DNA from: Setoptus koraiensis
Lineage: Eukaryota; Animalia; Arthropoda
Length of the DNA: 64,000 bases
Assembly: GCA_048013815.1 (NCBI GenBank)
Contig: CM106586.1
Location: forward strand, 14,632,001-14,696,000
Direction: 5' to 3'
The notes under the pieces are model-generated. The model did no database searches. It was not told where the DNA came from and worked only from the letters and a program-made list of their open reading frames with translations. The position numbers and the translations under genes are program-made. This document shows, piece by piece, positions 5,951 through 54,733 of the stretch; position 1 is the stretch's first letter; each line of letters starts with the position of its first letter.

Positions 5951-7252
5951 TGGCCGCCGCTCAATGGGACGGCAGCAGCGGCGACGTAAGTTGTTTTTAT
6001 TTGCTGCACACGCTGACCTACATTCTATTCATTCGCTCTCTGGGCTATGCCGGGCACGCCGATCGCCCTGGCAATCACAATCCGTCTCATCTGATCCTGT
6101 CGAACGGTTCTTTGGCGTTCCTTGGCGGCGCCGTTGGCCGTCGCCCGTTCGCTCGCTGGCTGGTTGGCTCGTCTGCTCCATCTTGGCGCTCTCTGTGTCG
6201 CCGTCGCAAGCTCAATCTCAAGCTCAACTTCTCTCCCTGGCAGCAACGACGCCAACAACAACGACAACAACAGCGGCAACGAGCGCCGCAACTGGCACAA
6301 CTGGCGCAACTAGTGCGACGGCCGGCTCGGCATGAGTAGCGCAACGGTAAGGCTACTCATGCGTTTCCATCATTGTTTGTTACGTAACTGCGTCCACTGC
6401 AACACGACAAACAGTTGCTGGCGTCCATTTTGGGTCTCGCCTTGGCTCTTTCTCATGGACACACACACACACACACACACACGCCATTCCGGCATGGCCG
6501 GCATTTTGCTGGCCACCTCCGCCCGACAAACTAAACATACACACACACACACACACACACGTTTGCCATGTGTGTGTCCCGGCTTCGGGTGACGCCAAAT
6601 CTAGCCGGCCAAATCTAGCTGGCCAAAGCCGGCTCGCCAAAGCCGGCTCGCCAAGCTTGCGTGATGCCGGCCGGCCCGGCTGTCGCTGGCGGCTCGCCGG
6701 CGTCGCTCGGTCATCGTGCTACGTGCATTTGTTGCGCATAACAAGCGGTCTAATTAGATCACTTATGGGTGCACTTACGCAATCAATGCAACCAGCCGGC
6801 GGATCTCGACGCGGGGGCCCCAAGTGGCGCCCCTCTCGCGTCGTATCTTTGCGTGGCCGCCTCTCAAACCGTTTGGTCATGGCGAAATGTTGTCAAGCCC
6901 ATGCCGTGCTGACGCACGTGAGCCACTTGCACGGCAATTGCACGCAATTACGCAACGCGCTTACAACAACAAATTCAGTTGAGCTAATTATCGGCACGAA
7001 CGGTGATTGTGGCAATTAGCACGCATTGCGCAAACAAACGTCACAATTTGTGACTCACAAACGTGTCACGTCGTCACAGCGTCGTTGTGACGGATAGGCG
7101 ACAACAGAGCGGCGACAACGGAACGACGACAACGGAACGACGACAGCGCAATGACGACAACAGAATGACGGCACAACGTAACGGTAAATCACCGTTATGC
7201 GAGCAGCAGGTGCGAGCTGCCCGCTTGCCCGTTGTTCCTGTCGTTGGTCCTA

Positions 7253-7358
7253 CCGGCGCAACGAACCGGCCCGACCGGCGCAACGAACCGGCCCGACTGG
7301 AGCAAACGAGCGGCCCGAGCGGCGCGAACAAGCGGCCCGAGCAGCGCAAACAAACGGC
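7253..7358. repeat. 22-bp minisatellite, about 5 diverging copies
   Basis: CCGGCGCAACGAACCGGCCCGA is exact at 7253 and 7275, with degenerate copies at 7297, 7319 and 7341. Confidence 0.85.
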
Positions 7359-8451
7359 ATTGCGTCGCCGTGCTTGTTGCGCCCGGCCTCACAGTAGGCG
7401 TCACATCGAGGCTGTGCCGTCCCGCTCGCAGCTAGCTCGCCAAGTCGCACTGTCACAAATGTTGTGCACGCGTGCTTGGAACAACGTACGCCAGGGCGGC
7501 GCGACTGCGCCCCATCGGCGGCCACTGCGAGCCCAGACCAGAACTGTCCAGTCGAACTGTGACTGTCACAGTCCAATTATGGGACTGCGAGCGGGTCGAC
7601 TTCGGGCCGCAGGCCGTCAGCGCCCCCCAGCGTACGGTGCGAGGAAGCGTCGCGCAAAGGATGAGCACGGCGGCACAGACACGCCATTGGCAGCACATTG
7701 TCTAGCTAACTGAATCAGTTGAACTGATCGACTAACTGCAGTTTGTGCGCGGCTCGCCACTCGCCTCTCGCAACAGTGTGCAGTTGTGGCATCTACAGTC
7801 CATTGGCAGCGCATTGGCATCGAGTGAAAAATAACTGGCACAACGAGACAGCGCGCCGTTGCGCAAGTTGAGTCCGCCAGCAAACCGAACAACAGAGCAG
7901 CGCTTGTCGTGTTGCGCAATCGCACCGAAGTGCGCAACCTGGCGAACCGCATGGTCTCAACAGTGCACAACAGTTTGCACAGCAACTGCACAGTTTTCAA
8001 CCCAACAGTAACTGTGAACTGTTGAGCACAGCAGTCACTGTTGAGCTGCCGGCCGCGCCGCTTGTCAAGCAAACGCAACAGTGCGGACAAGCTAGCGAAT
8101 TTGCGACGTTGCGCCGTTTGCGTTGCCGTTACTTGTCGCTGGCCTGCGTGTGTCTTGTTGCTGTTGTGGCAACTTTTTTATCGCAACTCGCTCAACGGGC
8201 GACTCACAGACGACGATGGCGCGACTCAACTCTTTGAGTCTCCGCCATGACACCAAAGAGTGGCTGAGTCCGCCCGACTCTGTTAGTTAGTCTGTTAGTT
8301 GGTCCGGGCCGACGGCTGCTAGCAGAGTGTGCGGCTGGCGGAGCCCGCGGCTGGCAGAGTCCGCACTCTGTCGCTGGCGGAGTCCGCGGTGCAGCGCTGA
8401 GTCGGGCGACTGGCACAGTTGCGCCGAGTAGCGGCACTTGAGCCCGGTCGT

Positions 8452-45112: not shown

Positions 45113-45313
45113 TTACTGTCGATAACACTGATAACATTGATAACATCCATAGCATTGACAGCATCCGCAATGAGCTGTCATTCGAGAATGAATTTCGCGC
45201 CTTTCTACATCGAGCACAGAGACATCTAGGGGAAATGTTTGCAATGAAAATCATATCTGCCGCAAAATCTTTCTCTTATACTCACCTGGTTTGCCATCTA
45301 TTTCCATGATCAT
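45113..45313 (-). CDS. Candidate 44-46-aa spliced Cys-rich micropeptide
   Basis: Exon 45313/45307-45286 ends CCAG|GTGAGT; 60-nt intron ends TTTCCCCTAG; exon 45225-45113. Peptide (MI)MEIDGKPDVSVLDVERREIHSRMTAHCGCCQCYGCYQCYQCYRQ*. It overlaps a putative promoter element, so it may be non-coding. Confidence 0.3.
45187..45228 (+). promoter_or_regulatory. 42-bp bipartite element (E2F-type TTTCGCGCC plus GAGACATCTA box) upstream of LSM4
   Basis: 35/42 identical, ungapped, to the reverse complement of 47270-47311. Confidence 0.6.
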
Positions 45314-45622: not shown

Positions 45623-45916
45623 ATGCTTCCCCTGACCTTGTTAAAGACAGCACAAAATCAGCCCATGCTAGTTGAGCTGAAGAACGGTGAAACATACAAC
45701 GGACATTTGGCATCTTGTGACAACTGGATGAATATCCATCTCAAAGGCGATGTCATTTGTACATCTAAAGACGGTGATAGGTTCTGGAAGATGCCAGAAT
45801 GTTATATTAAAGGTTCTATGATCAAATATTTACGACTGCCCGATGAAGTCATGGATCTAGCCAAGCAACAACCAGAAAACAACAAGCGTCGCAGAAGAGA
45901 CAACAACAATAGATAG
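45623..45916 (+). CDS. LSM4: U6 snRNA-associated Sm-like protein LSm4, 97 aa
   Basis: [37 protein letters not shown]...[32 protein letters not shown]. True ATG is at 45623; the ORF track started at an upstream TTG. Confidence 0.95.
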
Positions 45917-46094
45917 GGATTATCATAACAATAAATAAACGAAGGATAAAAAAACACTGTTCGTAGTAGACAAAAAGACAATTCTATCTGGTGTACAAAT
46001 ATACATACGTTCAAACAATGATCTCAAAAGAAAGAAAAGCTATCATAAATTTAGCAATTGATCAAACCTAACTAAATATGCTGTTCTATTAATA

Positions 46095-47118
46095 TCATGT
46101 ATTTAATCGGACCTGTTTCTCAATCTTTTGAGCAAGCTCAGCCTCCAGTTTAAATCTGACGAAAGTGGTCACTGTTCTTCTTTTACCTGTTATCACATTT
46201 CCGTGAGTGACATCATCGAAGCGACTCTCGTAATTACTAATAGAGTCGGGACAATCATAATTGATTAGATGTGATATCTAGTAGAAGTTGGTAGATTGAT
46301 GGAGGTTTGTAACAAGGAATGACAAGGGTGAAGGGTGGAAAATATGTTAGAATAACCAGCTGCAAAGAGTAGTACTTTTTAGATGTTCTCAAACTTCACC
46401 CACTTACAACAAAACCGAAATTTTTTGTCTGGTGTTGATAAACTTGGTCCATCTCATGTCGGCCTTGAACAGACGAATCCAGCTTCAACAAGATGTTGCA
46501 ATCCATGGCTTGGAGTTCCTGTAAGAAAAGCTGATTTGCTGCTTCACTCAAGTTACTTTTGACTACCTTAGCAAATAGTTTCTCTTTGTTCAACAACATC
46601 TCTAGATAGGAGGCAGTGCCTAGCTTACGGGAGTATACGGCCACAAATGGGATACGACCACTATCATCAGTCGTTTTATTTAGCCTCTTCAGAAGCTTTA
46701 TGAGGAGATCTGGCCTATCATCACGATTAACTCTGATAAACTTTTGCTCTATGTGCCCTGATAGATAGGAGACTGGATTTTCGTCAATTCTACCACCCTC
46801 ATATGATCCATTTCTGGCAAATGGCTTTATTATAAAATACTGGCCAGTCGAGGTCATTCTCTTCCATCTATATGTGGCCAATGTTAGTCGGTTGTGATCA
46901 TAAGTCTGCCCTTCATGATGGGCCAATTTCCTTGCTCGGCATCTGATGATTGGAACGTCCGCTTTTCCCAATTGACTGTCTCTTCTAAACTTCTCAAGTT
47001 CTTCATTTCTGATTGCACCTTTGAGTTTCCTCATGCCCTCTTTGTAGTAAACTGGCAGTTTGATAACGGGCAGATCAACCGCAACGCGGGATAGCTTGAG
47101 GCTAGATACAATCACCAT
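46095..47118 (-). CDS. DDX28: DDX28-like protein lacking the DEAD (RecA1) domain, about 297 aa, 2 exons
   Basis: Exon 47118-46408 ends GTT|GTAAGT; 130-nt intron; exon 46277-46095 (ISHLINYDCPDSISNYESRF...VTTFV...ELAQKIE). N-terminus PII.C....L.HH.GQTY.....LATYRW....STGQYFII resembles the DDX28 extension; HIEQKFIRV, FVAVYS and ILLKLDSSVQG resemble the RecA2 domain. The 5' end is uncertain. Confidence 0.7.
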
Positions 47119-47269
47119 GATGATCGTGATGTATCCAATAATACGAGCAACATTAAGGAAAGAGGTTGCAAAATTGTAAAAAACGTGGACAAACGCATTT
47201 TATCTGTCGGAGTTATTGTTGCATAATATTGAAAGTACCAGAGTTTATTTTGAACGCGCCGATTCCCTG

Positions 47270-47311
47270 TAGATGTCTCTGAGCTTGAACTGGGAGGGCG
47301 CGAAATTCATT
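47270..47311 (-). promoter_or_regulatory. Second copy of the 42-bp bipartite element, upstream of DDX28-like
   Basis: Reverse complement reads AATGAATTTCGCGCCCTCCCAGTTCAAGCTCAGAGACATCTA. Confidence 0.6.
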
Positions 47312-48673: not shown

Positions 48674-51296
48674 ATGAAGCTCGCTCTAAGCATCGCTTTG
48701 TTGGGTCTCTTTGCCGTAGGTAAGTATTGGGCTCGCATTAGTAATTAGATTGGTTATTATTAAGAGTAGTGATAATAGTGCAAACAAACAAAAAATGACA
48801 AGTATAACAGCAAAGATAATCATGTCCAGTGTTAATTGTTAATTGCAGTCAATCAAGCAAGTCACTGAATGTAAACAAACAACTGCTCATCAGCATCTGA
48901 CTAATCGAACCATTATGTGTTTCATCCATACCCACTATGCAAATGAAAATGAAATCAACCGCCAATCAATCACAAATTTGCGAAAACTACAGCCGCCTTG
49001 GCTCGCACTGACATCCAGCGAAAAGAATTCAAATTTGCACCAGGAAAGATCCAGACCTATGAATATCGCGGTCGTCTAGTCAACGGAATTCCAAAATTGG
49101 CCAACCAATACTCAGGCCTACAAGTTGAGAGCAAGGTAGTTGTTGAGCCAGTGAATGATCAACAAGTTGTGATGAAACTCGAGCAAATTCGAGTTAGTGA
49201 ATTGCCACGCCATCACAATGTTGAACATTATGAAAGAATTGGCTCAGACAGCTTTGACAATGTCAAATACAGCCAAAACAAGCAACTGACCGAAGAATAT
49301 CAAGGTGAATTGTCGAAGCCAATTCGTTTCACCTACATCGACGGCAAAGTTGAGGGTTTTGAGGCTGCCGCTGACGAAGCCGAATGGTCAGTCAACATGA
49401 AAAAGAGCATCTTGTCTCTATTTCAATTGGACCTAACACCAAGCAAAATCATTAAAGCAGACTCATTGAGACGCTTGTCTACACAAAAACAAGAGACCGA
49501 GCTAAGCACCATCGTTGATCCAATCACCGGCGAACGTCGCGTTGGTCAATTTAGCCCCGAAATGGTGCTCAGCAAGACATCGGCCCTGCCATTGGTGTAC
49601 CCAGTGTACGAGGACTCATTCCAGGGTATCTGTGAGACCCAATACCAGGTTGATTCTGTTGAGAACATCGACGAGCAAAAGCATCAACAACAGCAACAAG
49701 AACGCTACCCAGAATTCTACCCGCTCGACTCAAATGCTGACATGCACCACGACTCATACAGTCGCTCCAAGAGCATCGCTGGTGAAAAAGATTTCGACTT
49801 CAACGTGTTGAACGTCACCAAAACAATCAACTTCAAGAATTGTCTGACCGACCCGAGCGTCGCATACGACCAACATATCTTTGGCTCGAAGGCCTCAGTG
49901 TTGACCCAATGGCAAAAGGCTTACATTGAGCGAAAGCGTCAAGCCCGCTACAACAGCGTTCCAGAGGAGATCAAACAAAAATACTCAAACGTATTCACCT
50001 CAGAGGAGGAAAACAACAACGTTGCCGCCCCAATGCCGGTTGACCGTTACTCGTTCACTAAATACAACATCACCCAAGACCACCGAACAGGTTTGAGCCT
50101 CATCGAGGGAGTGCTAGCCGAGGGTAAAATCAAATATCAGGCCGACGGTGACGAGCTTGTGTCTATCAGTCACCAAAAGCTGAACCTGTTGAGCGTCAAG
50201 AACGCCCAGCAAGATTCGCAATCGTTGATGAGAAAATTCGAACAACAAATTGGCCAAGCAGAATATTACACAACAATCCAAAACGAGATGAGCCAACAAA
50301 AGTTGCAACAACGCAACTACCTGCCAACCACTTACTCAGCCAATGTTGCCAGTTACACCAAAGGTCTATACAACAATGTTGACAGCCACAACAAAATTAA
50401 CTTCAACATTGACAGCCACAACAAGGATAGCCACAACTCCGACAGTCACACAAACTGGGGCACCGACGTGTCGCACGGTTCGTTCGGACACGTGGACACA
50501 ATCGGAAACGCGGCCAGAACCGCGGCAAAAAGAAGCATCTGGCCCCAACGGGATCAAACAGGCGGAATTAAATTGGGCCGAGACAGCTCAAAGGTGCAGC
50601 CACCGTTCGCCAGTTCTGCCTCGTGGTACTCGCTGATTTCGGACGACGACGATGTGACCGTGCCCACAAGGGTGCTAGTGAAGCGCGTCATTCAGCTGCT
50701 GAAAGATCTGGCCAAGGCCGTCGAGTCGGACATTGTGTCAGAGGACACGAAGAAGGCCGGCAACAGAGTTGTGCAAATTACGCACATCATGTCCAATTTG
50801 CCCGCTGACAAATTGTACGAAATCTACGACAGAATCACTAGAAAATTGTACGACGATTCCGACAGCGACTTGGGCGCCACCATTGTGTCCAGCTCCGACA
50901 ACGATCTCACCGTTAAGATTATGCGCAGATTGTTCTTGGACTCGTTGCCTTTGGCCGGAACAAAACCTAGCGTTAGCGTCATTGTTGAACTGATTGAGAA
51001 GCGTCTCGTGAGCGCCTACGAGGCCAAGCAACTGGTGGAGGCCAGCCCTGCCAGCATCCGTTATCCGAGCAAGGACATCATTGACGCATTTGTGCGTTTG
51101 AGCCAAATACCTGCGGTTCGCGACAACGAAACCCTCAAGATGTCGACCTCGATCGCCGCGGCCAAAATGATTGCAAACGCGTACGCACGAAGCAAGAATT
51201 TGAGCCACAAATCGACCGTTTACGAGAAGCGATTGCCCGCTCATTTGCGCGAGGATCGCGATTCGGCCCTGATTGCCGGTGATGCCGACCCACGCT

Positions 51297-51339
<43 letters not shown>

Positions 51340-54300
51340 GAACTACGTCAGCTACGGCCAACAGAAGCTGCGCGGCGAGCTCATCGACGAGCTGGACATC
51401 GCCAAGTACGTGCAAATCTTCCAGGGCATGCTGGACAAATCGAGAAGCTACCACGACCGCGTCACCTACATCGAGACGCTGGCCCACATGAAGGTGCCCC
51501 AAGTGTTGCCCGTGTTGAAGCCGTACATCAGCGGCCGCATTTCGCTGAACCAGTGCCTCAACTCGAAGAGTTACGCCGACGACTACACCGTGTTCGAGCA
51601 CCAGCGCCAGCAGCACCAATACCGCAGCATGCGCCAACAACAACAACAACAACAGCGCCAACAATCTGAGACGGCAAGCGACAACAAAAACTGGTCCGAC
51701 AAAGACGGCAAAGACGCCGAGGAGTGCAACTTCCTGCGAACCGTGGCCATTTACGCTTGTGCCCACATTGCCCGTACCCAGGCGGCCAAGAACGAGATTG
51801 TACCGCTAGTGTTGCCCGTATTTGACAACACCTACGAGCCATACCAGATCCGCATTGCCGCGTTCACCGTGGCCACCCTGGCCGACATTGACGAGTCAAC
51901 TTTGGAGCGCATTGCGTCACAAATGTGGCGCGAGCCAAGCAAACAAGTGGCCTCGTTCGTTGTGGGCACCCTAGACACGCTGGCCCAAATGAGCCATCCC
52001 AAAATGGCCAAGATCGCCTACATGGCGCGCAAGGCCACCGAGTCCATGCCAAAGGAGTACCTGAACACGTGGCGATACTCGTGGCTCATGGGCGGCGACC
52101 ATTACAACAACGAAATCGAGCAAGGTTACTCGTGGATCAGCGAGCTGATTAAATCCAATGTGTCGGCGGTGCCACGTGCCGGATATTTCCATTTCGGTCA
52201 CTCGCACGGACCGGCCGCTCAGAACTACGACAACAAAATTGAGCTAGGCTGGACCGCCAAGGGTCTCGAGCAATTCATGGATGAATATTTGGCCGAGGAG
52301 GAGGGCTCCGTGTTGGCCACCCTGTTGCAGCAAGTGTTCGCCTCTAGCGACGACATTGAGCAATACTACGAGGACGCTCGCAAATCGTTCCACAACCACA
52401 ACCAGGGTGAGAATGAGCAAGACAATGAGCAAGACGATGACGACTTCGTCTCGTCGAGATATTCACGCTCGCAACTGGGCAGAGAAGCCGCCAACAAGCG
52501 TCAACAACATCGCGAAAAAATGATGAGAAAGATCAGATCGGCATCGTCGCCATCGGAGAGATCGTTCGGAAACCAGCAACAACAACAACAAAGAACAACC
52601 ACACACAAACAACAACAACAACGAGAGGAGCAATACTTCTCGCGCGACGGACAATCCTACTCGTGGGAGTCTAACAAAGAGGAGCCAAAATTGGCTTTGT
52701 TCGCAAAATTGTTCGACCAAACAACCTATCTAGCTTTAGACAAACAACAAATGAAAAAGATGGCCAGAGATTTCGATGATTACATCACCGAAGTGGGCAA
52801 GGAGCTGCTGTTGGGCAACAAGGTCACCTATGTCAAGATGATCATGCCCGATTCAATGTGGCAAATGGTGCCATCGCAAATGGGTCTGCCCGTCATCATC
52901 ACTCACCGCAAGCCAATCATTGTCAGCGTGACATTTGACGGAACAAAGAACAGCCCAACCACACAAACACAAACAACCACAAACAACAACAACAACGACA
53001 ACAAGTGGTCGAGATGGTCCAGCCCGAGCGGCCTTGCCCAACAGCAATCGGGCCTGAGCCACTTGAGCGTCTACGTTCACCCCAAGATCATCATGTCAAA
53101 CTATCGTTTCATGTTCGCCGTTGACCAAGCACAAAAGGTCGCCTACGGTGTCCAGACAGAGAAATCGGCCCAAATTTCGCTACCAGTCGTCATGTCGGCC
53201 GCCTACTCGCAACCAAAACAAATTGTCTCGTTTGCCCTGGCCCCAATTTTCCTCAACAACAAGCCACAACAACAACAACAACAACAACAACAACAGCAAC
53301 AACAACAACAACAACAACAACAACAACCACAACAACAACAGGACGAGGAAGAGCAAGTGATCGAGCCCGCTTTCCTCAACTACAATTCTAAGACCATCAA
53401 TTACGGTTCGCCCACAAACACCAACACCAACACCGACACCAACGCCGAAACCAAAACCAAAACCAGCACCAAGTCGTTCACTGATGAACTGTTCTCAAGA
53501 GGCGTCTTGGATGTGATCTTTGGCGGCCGCGTGAAGAGAAACTCCGTGTTTGAGATGCCATCGTTCAGAGACAACAAACAGCAACAATCGTCCCAATTCT
53601 GGTCCACCCAGGTCGCCAAGACCTTCGTCGGTGATCTGGACCTGTTCCAGTTGCAACAACAGCAACAACAACAACGCGCCAACTCGTTGTTTGACAGCCA
53701 CAACCGTGACAGCCACTATTTCGACAGTCACATAAACTCAGATAAAGAGTCGCATAGCCAATTTGGCAAAATTGCCAAGAGAAACACTGAACAAACAACA
53801 AGAACAAGCAACAGTTGGTTGGGCGACGAGCAAATCATTCGCTCTAAATCGTCTGACAACGTCAAATCGCCAATTAACGTGTCGCCAGCGAGCCAATTGA
53901 GAGAATTCCAGCGCACCTACAACCAAAAAGTTTTGGGTGTCGAGCTTGTGATTGACGGTGTCACAGACGAAGATCACTCTGATCTGTCATTCAGCAACAT
54001 GGACGACAAACTGCAACATCGTGCCAGCGGACCAAACGCGCACGTGCTGCACGTTCTAGACGAGCTGACCAGTCGCCCAAGCAAATACCAGGAGGTTTAC
54101 GGTTACCTGAGACCGAACCAGCTGAACAAGGAGCCAGTGTACAAATTTGAGGTTGCCCTGCAAAATCAAATGAAGGTCTACAACGGCCAACAACAAATGA
54201 GCTACATCAAGGAGTTGCACCAGCAACGCCAACAGCAACTGTCCGCTGCTGCCCTCAAAAGAGTGTCGAGAGAGCCCTTCTCAGGCAACGACGACGACAA

Positions 54301-54733
54301 AGAATACGAAGCAACAGGAATGGCAGATTCAGGCTTCTTGGACAGACCAGATTTGGACGAACCTCAAACCGACGACAAAAACGGCGAGAAGTCGGGCAAA
54401 GCGTCAAAAAACTGGCCAGGTAAAAAGGGAGGAACGGTGACACCGTGGCTATACACTGCTATGGAAAAGATTGACGGTGTAAACTGTTTCTCGGTGCAAC
54501 CAGTGTACAAATGCCCATACGGCATGGAGATGCAAATCAAAGAAATCGAGGTGACATTCTTCTGTCCCAAACGAGCAGACCAGCTACAAATGGCTCAAGA
54601 ATGGGCCAGATTGTCCGATAACGATGAAAAGATAGACGCAATGGCACACATGCTCGCAAAGGGCGATATGGCCCCGAAAAAAGTCTATGCCCAGCCTGAA
54701 AAGTGCTACATAGAAAAGCGTGTCCGTTATTAG
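48674..54733 (+). CDS. Vg: Vitellogenin / large lipid transfer protein, about 1,928 aa, 2 exons
   Basis: Exon 1 48674-48719 (MKLALSIALLGLFAV|gtaagt); exon 2 48993-54733, phase 1. LLTP motifs: YEYRGRLVNGIP...QYSGL, NMKKSILSLFQ, YEDSFQGICETQY, NVTKTINFKNC, LFLDSLPLAGT, IRIAAF, QVASFV, PSQMGLP. Furin-type RVKR site; C-terminal CFSVQPVYKC...FFC...PEKC. Confidence 0.9.

Follow-up and report, generated by a model that had tools for sequence, protein, structure and literature searches.

What defines a DEAD-box protein is a pair of RecA domains that clamp shut around ATP and RNA. Can a gene of this kind lose one of the two and still be maintained by selection? The question is raised by a gene of the eriophyoid (gall- or rust-type) mite Setoptus koraiensis, found at positions 46095-47118 of a 64,000 nucleotide (nt) stretch of contig CM106586.1 (GenBank assembly GCA_048013815.1, positions 14,632,001 to 14,696,000 of the forward strand), the whole of which is called the window here. 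An earlier note, made from the letters of the window, had described it as a half-helicase: a DDX28-like gene from which the first RecA domain (RecA1) is cleanly missing and whose second one (RecA2) has degenerate catalytic motifs. The segment is the whole coding sequence of a two-exon gene on the minus strand with a 297 amino acid (aa) product; the host genome assembly consists of two contigs (24.2 and 24.5 Mb) and its genes are intron-poor. We hold it highly probable that this half-protein derives from DDX28, lacks RecA1, is catalytically dead but functional, and is the only DDX28 of the genome. The best overall explanation, to which we assign a probability of about 0.6, is that it is a RecA1-less DDX28 orthologue acting as a passive assembly factor of the large subunit of the mitochondrial ribosome (mitoribosome).

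Both exons were aligned with seven full-length DDX28 proteins. Residues 1 to ~100 correspond to the DDX28 N-terminal extension (N-extension); they are followed by ~19 unconserved residues and then by the first strand of RecA2, which restarts with LSGHIEQKFIRV where full-length DDX28 has LH..PHV.QKF.RV. The columns of the Q motif, GSGKT, DEAD and SAT form one gap of ~250 columns (RecA1 of full-length DDX28 has ~230-250 residues). This agrees with the earlier description of an N-extension joined by about 20 residues straight to RecA2 within one exon, without Q motif, Walker A, DEAD or SAT. The motifs of RecA2 are degraded too. Motif IV (canonical V.IF.NK) reads FVAVYSRK, the arginine of QxxR is gone, motif V (canonical TD..SRGLD) has become LDSSVQGRH with an insertion and motif VI (canonical HR.GR.GR) is ESRFDDVTH with two extra residues, the last two exactly as first reported. 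Exon 2 keeps the DDX28-type C-terminal strand and helix (VTTFV...L..KIE..VR) and lacks the usual C-terminal tail. The gene is composed as follows, the first line being taken from a transcript-like contig of sequencing run X7 that covers 46924-47163:

47119..47163, minus strand: 5′ untranslated region (UTR) of at least 45 nt
47118..46408, minus strand: exon 1, 237 aa, ending in GFV, donor GTAAGT; holds the N-extension, the deletion scar and RecA2 to just beyond the degenerate motif V
46819..47118, minus strand: N-extension, residues 1-100 (alignment), with motifs LPVI.LPVYY, PIIRC, GQ.Y, LA..RWK and GQYF
46765..46818, minus strand: junction or "scar", residues 101-118, a short linker without conservation, standing where RecA1 would be
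46408..46764, minus strand: first part of RecA2, residues 119-237 (phmmer against PDB and profile matches to DDX28 residues 354-474), with strand 1 LSGHIEQKF, the weakened motif IV and QxxR lost
46456..46482, minus strand: degenerate motif V, followed by a lineage-specific insertion (alignment)
46407..46278, minus strand: intron, 130 nt, GT..AG, acceptor ..CTAG, phase 0
46277..46095, minus strand: exon 2, 60 aa and TGA; ISHLINYDCP, degenerate motif VI, C-terminal strand and helix
46203..46229, minus strand: degenerate motif VI with its 2-residue insertion, every arginine lost
45623..45916, plus strand: LSM4, the convergent neighbour (Pfam LSM, 4e-15), a synteny marker in all three mite species discussed below

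P-loop, DEAD box and arginine fingers are all missing from the protein, which would therefore be unable to bind or hydrolyse ATP; with a single RecA domain, no RNA clamp could form between two. That it is ATPase-dead, as had been proposed, follows from its sequence. At E values up to 10 neither exon matches a Pfam family (PF00270 and PF00271 included), and genome-wide scans list the locus neither among the 65 matches to PF00271 nor among those to PF00270. Upstream exons coding RecA1 were considered and rejected: the Pfam scan gives no PF00270 match at or near the locus, and a transcript-like contig runs collinearly with the genome over the junction.

Descent from DDX28 is shown by sequence comparison. 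Exon 1 was searched by phmmer against 1.84 billion protein representatives, with 26 matches. Besides two mite proteins these are mostly 480-580 aa long, with a few shorter fragments, and the long ones align in two stretches, the N-extension and RecA2; the seven long matches that were scanned all have DEAD and Helicase_C domains. Many carry the name DDX28 in their source (Centruroides, Limulus, Nymphon, Dinothrombium, Cherax, Patella, Babylonia). Residues 15-115 of exon 1 match Centruroides DDX28 36-137 (E 8.7e-14) and Limulus DDX28 22-116 (E 2.5e-13), both values being for the whole library. One full-length match, P0005, was compared in turn with human DDX28, which it matches at 2.8e-75, the next family following at 3e-38. 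The N-extension by itself has no match in PDB, its homology being visible only against arthropod DDX28 proteins. Searched exon by exon against PDB as a single sequence, the half-protein reaches human DDX28 at only E 0.21. A profile of the three RecA1-less mite proteins, run against PDB at E values up to 1, matches DDX28 as the only helicase (1.1e-7 and 1.5e-4). The first assignment to a DDX28-like family is thus borne out by both parts of the protein, and no profile search led to another family.

Selection, age and predicted fold

Logan contig L001, from a sister species, carries an orthologue with identical neighbour order, and the two proteins are 83% identical. Indels between the species are confined to the intron; donor, acceptor and stop are conserved and there is no frameshift or premature stop in either species. 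The Nei-Gojobori comparison over 297 codons gives dN 0.087, dS 0.81 and dN/dS 0.108, with 0.116 for the N-extension, 0.103 for RecA2 and 0.06 for exon 2. Judged from these ratios, the gene is under strong purifying selection and is functional, not a relic; a dN/dS check had been proposed at the outset, and the value found leaves no room for neutral evolution.

The nearest named relative of the half-protein is a hypothetical protein of Fragariocoptes setiger (KAG9510013.1, named P0002 here; 38% identity, E 7e-32), which also lacks RecA1. Its locus (JAIFTH010000260.1; L009 6001-7696) has an exon 1 of 273 aa with donor GTAAGT, a 114 nt intron at the same phase-0 site, directly before I.H.I.YDCP, and an exon 2 open frame of 60 aa that ends 54 nt from the convergent LSM4 (7170-7502). 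The sequence restarts after the gap with LSGH[IV]EQ in both genera. At the positions of motifs V and VI Fragariocoptes has TNDFNPTLTH and ENLLESLFY, wholly different from Setoptus, while the flanking segments are conserved between the genera, a pattern to be expected of motifs left unconstrained by an ATP site without function. The NCBI model of KAG9510013.1 quits exon 2 after ...GDVTK and splices across LSM4. It is probably wrong, since the unspliced frame runs on for another 30 residues before the stop at 7116 and its ...GKTRTVTTFIRFVLEA..AQ.LE... is homologous to the C-terminus of the window protein; the true protein would have 333 aa, not 345.

A maximum-likelihood tree unites the three RecA1-less proteins (100/99), with a very long stem beneath them, and does not settle their place among chelicerates. 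The velvet mite Dinothrombium, an acariform, has a full-length DDX28 of 542 aa, and loss of RecA1 is therefore not general to mites. These sequences are best explained by one old in-frame deletion of RecA1 in an ancestor of at least the Setoptus-like and Fragariocoptes lineages. If the Setoptus-type (nalepelline) and Fragariocoptes-type phytoptids are, as we assume, early-diverging eriophyoid lineages, the deletion would lie near the base of Eriophyoidea. Word-index searches for more orthologues with exon 1 and with the Fragariocoptes protein returned only the sister species and the query itself.

An AlphaFold2 (AF2) model was built for P0002 from a 25-sequence alignment (predicted local distance difference test, pLDDT, 68.6). 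The RecA2 core has pLDDT 80-95 and the long helix of the N-extension 86-94. Foldseek finds DEAD-box C-terminal domains, with template modelling (TM) scores of 0.6-0.68 to isolated crystal domains. VIA-align places mouse DDX28 in the pre-mitoribosome first (9HCD, Z 18.4; 9HCC, Z 18.0), with 201-205 residues aligned between 82-342 of the model and 63-514 of the mouse chain, that is, part of the N-extension plus RecA2; structures with RecA2 only align over ~125-160 residues at Z no higher than 15 (13-15 for isolated crystal domains). The extra ~55 aligned residues are the N-extension, and the model therefore places it on RecA2 as in DDX28. N-extension and RecA2, which also pack together in models of full-length DDX28, are thereby predicted to make one compact module, an arrangement that would explain how the protein stayed coherent after RecA1 was excised. 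The AF2 model of window exon 1 alone has pLDDT 62, below 50 at residues 101-119, with a beta-alpha pattern in its RecA2 part. The structural check put forward earlier thus came out for the Fragariocoptes orthologue, whose best match is DDX28; the exon 1 model of Setoptus has no Foldseek match at E <=0.001.

Possible function of the half-protein

DDX28 binds 16S rRNA, and as long as it stays in place helices H80-88 of the central protuberance are kept immature; its RecA2 contacts the N-domain of MRM3 (PMC8316566; PMC12198368). On this basis we propose the following course for the mite protein. RecA1 would have been removed by an in-frame internal deletion in an eriophyoid ancestor, after which motifs V and VI would have been free to drift; on the N-extension, the RecA2 core and the C-terminal helix, by contrast, purifying selection remained strong. 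The half-protein would still enter mitochondria and, through the kept module, bind the large mitoribosomal subunit in its immature state, close to the central protuberance. There it would serve as an ATP-independent placeholder or chaperone, displaced by arriving ribosomal proteins and not by an ATPase cycle of its own, and it would have taken the place of canonical DDX28 in a lineage whose genome is heavily streamlined. That the half-protein continues to work in assembly of the mitoribosome large subunit is, taken by itself, about an even bet.

The genome offers a partial view of the pathway in which such a factor would act. It has two Obg-type GTPase loci (C1:14566239 and C2:10354905) and one RsfS/MALSU1 locus (C1:375660); a six-frame search for PF00588, the SpoU methyltransferase family to which MRM1, MRM3 and TARBP1 belong, came back empty, which falls short of proving absence. 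Large-subunit assembly therefore seems to have been pruned rather than lost, and loss of the MRM3 partner of DDX28 is suggested.

Several observations weigh against the proposed role. If MRM3 is gone, its published contact with RecA2 may no longer exist and is perhaps not what is conserved. In Setoptus the first conserved motif of the N-extension begins after only 14 residues, in other species after 25-50, so that a classical presequence is not evident. The RNA-contacting motifs IV, QxxR and V of RecA2 are degraded as well, and RNA binding, if kept, would therefore lie on other surfaces such as the basic N-extension (net charge +11). The exon 1 model is weak, DDX28 standing at rank 10 with E 0.018 in its Foldseek search, and the structural support comes from a medium-confidence Fragariocoptes model whose annotated tail is probably wrong. 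The mouse DDX28 chain matched by this model is itself the result of fitting at low resolution (PMC12198368). Finally, the RecA1-less form was found in just three species of the databases searched, none of them Eriophyidae.

Some of these points are shared by the alternative that survives best, which we consider unlikely but a serious competitor: the N-extension and RecA2 could have been retained for another job, for example as a protein-binding platform, perhaps outside mitochondria, and mitoribosome assembly would run without any DDX28 function. Such a change of role would fit the very short leader of Setoptus, the loss of all RNA- and ATP-contacting motifs, the lack of a detected SpoU/MRM3 homologue and the very long stem branch, a sign that change may have come in a burst once RecA1 was deleted. 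Many fold neighbours in PDB are, moreover, RecA2 domains with bound partner peptides. The columns best conserved with canonical DDX28, however, are the DDX28-specific N-extension and the C-terminal helix, which speaks for the retention of an ancestral interaction specific to DDX28. The N-terminus of the Fragariocoptes protein is long and arginine-rich, has no acidic residue before position 40 and so resembles a presequence, and the remaining Obg-type GTPases and MALSU1/RsfS are likewise at odds with a job elsewhere.

Comparison with known systems helps to place a putative passive mitoribosome assembly factor of this kind. With human, mouse and chelicerate DDX28 the mite protein shares a homologous N-extension, the first RecA2 strand (H..Q.F.R) and the C-terminal strand and helix (VT.FV...L..IE..R), and the predicted packing of N-extension on RecA2 in the Fragariocoptes orthologue resembles mouse DDX28 in 9HCC/9HCD. 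It differs in lacking RecA1 as a whole, with the Q motif and motifs I, Ia, Ib, II and III, in the degeneration of motifs IV, QxxR, V and VI with insertions after V and inside VI, in the missing C-terminal tail, and in its length (297 aa versus ~540). The yeast Mrh4 protein, the fungal counterpart of DDX28, is a mitochondrial DEAD-box protein of late large-subunit assembly with a complete helicase core.

For the mite protein's possible way of working, the nearest precedent is Utp25/Def. Utp25 is reported to be a DEAD-box descendant that lost its catalytic motifs and was kept as a non-enzymatic ribosome-assembly factor (PMC9539457). It has both RecA-like domains, whereas the mite protein has RecA2 alone, and it belongs to the nucleolar small-subunit (SSU) processome of the cytoplasmic ribosome, being ancient and universal in eukaryotes. 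The mite protein would be a lineage-specific reduction of a mitochondrial large-subunit factor. RecA2 domains that serve as docking platforms (DDX6 with CNOT1, EDC3 and LSM14; Vasa with the Oskar LOTUS domain; eIF4A3 with CWC22) have the fold predicted for the C-terminal half of the Fragariocoptes orthologue (Foldseek and VIA-align matches) and show that a RecA2 domain can bind partners specifically on its own. In those cases, however, RecA2 is part of a complete, active helicase, and the isolated domains are laboratory constructs, not natural genes.

The locus in its genome

Does the half-protein stand in for DDX28 or accompany it? The earlier note had left both possibilities. Exon 1 finds no paralogue in the host genome except for a weak match (E 0.014) to RecA2 of the DDX54 orthologue. 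Two DDX28 probes, P0005 and the Dinothrombium protein P0015, gave core-only matches at paralogue level that form a smooth series (<=126 and <=163 bits, respectively), headed by the vasa/DDX4 and DDX47 orthologues; the N-extensions of the probes match solely the present locus (E 6e-6 and 2e-6). These two probes thus found neither a full-length DDX28 in the genome nor a lone RecA1 of DDX28 type. This supports the view that the half-protein replaces DDX28 and is its only representative in the genome, not an additional paralogue, and the proposal that it accompanies an intact copy can be dropped. The published Setoptus koraiensis assembly has a BUSCO score of 89% (PMC11920263), which leaves a small risk of a missed gene.

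The same searches bear on the idea of a split helicase, in which RecA1 would be encoded elsewhere and the two halves would reassemble in trans into an active ATPase. The genome does have a DEAD-box open reading frame (ORF) with RecA1 only (contig C2 4579068-4580462, minus strand; L005 3069-4463). It is, however, DDX18/HAS1-like (5e-25 in PDB, versus 3e-11 for DDX28), with ADAH in place of DEAD and a basic, repeat-rich N-terminus. As neither probe finds a DDX28-like RecA1, and as motifs V and VI, needed for an ATP site in trans, are destroyed and unconserved even between the mite species, we regard a split enzyme as very improbable. A separate DDX28-type RecA1 gene was accordingly rejected, this lone candidate being of another type and itself degenerate.

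The RecA1-only ORF has 464 aa, with ETNKR repeats in its N-terminal part and TAT for SAT. It ends ~430 nt before the next gene (UGT-like), with no room for a RecA2, and may be a second half-helicase or a decaying gene. Elsewhere on contig C2 (24390082-24392691) two DEAD-box ORFs of 624 and 643 aa lie ~300 nt apart as head-to-head inverted duplicates; just one of them is in the Helicase_C list of the genome.

The gap at RecA1 could also reflect a collapsed assembly, a mis-annotation or a decaying pseudogene. Segment 45500-47400 was therefore compared with contigs of four public runs. In run X1 one 4-kb DNA contig spans the whole segment with zero differences. In run X7 contigs are limited to the exons of LSM4 and of the DDX28-like gene, covering 46408-47163 of the latter. 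An X7 contig joins 46277 to 46408 with exactly 130 nt removed (GT..AG on the minus strand, CT..AC on the plus strand), and the same contig is collinear with the genome across the junction of N-extension and RecA2 (46408-46952). The X7 record is silent on RNA or DNA origin; because of the exon-only coverage and the precise GT..AG joint, the run is most simply a transcriptome. The DDX28-like gene is then most simply explained as transcribed and spliced as modelled. The claim that frame and splice sites are intact thus holds, and the check for a misassembled junction turned up no collapse. That Pfam finds no domain in either exon would suit a relic, but dN/dS of 0.11 at dS 0.8 with frames open in both species, the identical architecture in a separately assembled genome of another genus, and the existence of a spliced contig and of an independent DNA contig that is identical across the junction make such an origin scarcely credible. 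Equally negligible is descent from another DEAD-box paralogue or from an unrelated alpha/beta protein resembling RecA2 by chance, for which the weak single-sequence PDB match and the DDX54 match within the genome might speak, given that N-extension homology is restricted to DDX28 proteins, that the profile picks DDX28 alone among all PDB DEAD-box chains and that the top structural match is DDX28 with a piece of the N-extension included.

Upstream of the start codon no in-frame ATG was found. An out-of-frame ATG 35 nt before it (47119-47153) opens a 13-codon upstream ORF that overlaps the main ATG and is not conserved in the sister species. The convergent spacer between the stop codons of LSM4 and the DDX28-like gene (45917-46094) has 178 nt; it is highly conserved in the sister species (L001 5425-5608), above the level of the intron and the 5′ flank. 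In Fragariocoptes it has only 54 nt. The 3′ UTRs probably overlap or share signals. The convergent pair is flanked by a 73-nt inverted repeat (45187-45259 and 47239-47311, 73% complementary), each arm of which lies upstream of the start of one gene; old terminal repeats or a promoter element common to both genes are possible readings. The neighbourhood also includes an RMD1-3 family gene, an NDOR1-like flavoprotein gene and a large gene starting at 48998. The last is a single-exon ORF (48998-54733) of 1911 aa, very rich in poly-Q and poly-N, whose N-terminal part is also a neighbour in the sister species. Where the GC content of the window exceeds 50%, the sequence codes for low-complexity runs of this sort.

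Bearing on DEAD-box proteins and eriophyoid mites

Taken by its sequence, the mite half-protein is a catalytically dead yet selected and spliced pseudohelicase, present in two genera and in a sister species. Our literature search found no description of DDX28 in mites, nor of a natural, selected DEAD-box protein consisting of RecA2 only. DDX28 is a conserved animal mitoribosome assembly factor, and the share of its role that needs ATP turnover is unsettled. A lineage that keeps the N-extension and RecA2 under strong constraint makes the ATP-dependence of this role testable, which is relevant to research on DEAD-box proteins and on mitoribosome assembly alike. Tentatively, the key part of DDX28 for building the large subunit could be the N-extension and RecA2 acting as an ATP-independent placeholder, and the mites would then be a natural separation-of-function experiment. 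It is likewise conceivable, on the same reading and with no greater assurance, that eriophyoids shed the helicase engine, possibly together with the MRM3 partner, as mitochondrial translation was streamlined. The RecA1-less DDX28 is in any case a clear further example of how genes and domains are reduced in arthropods with the smallest genomes.

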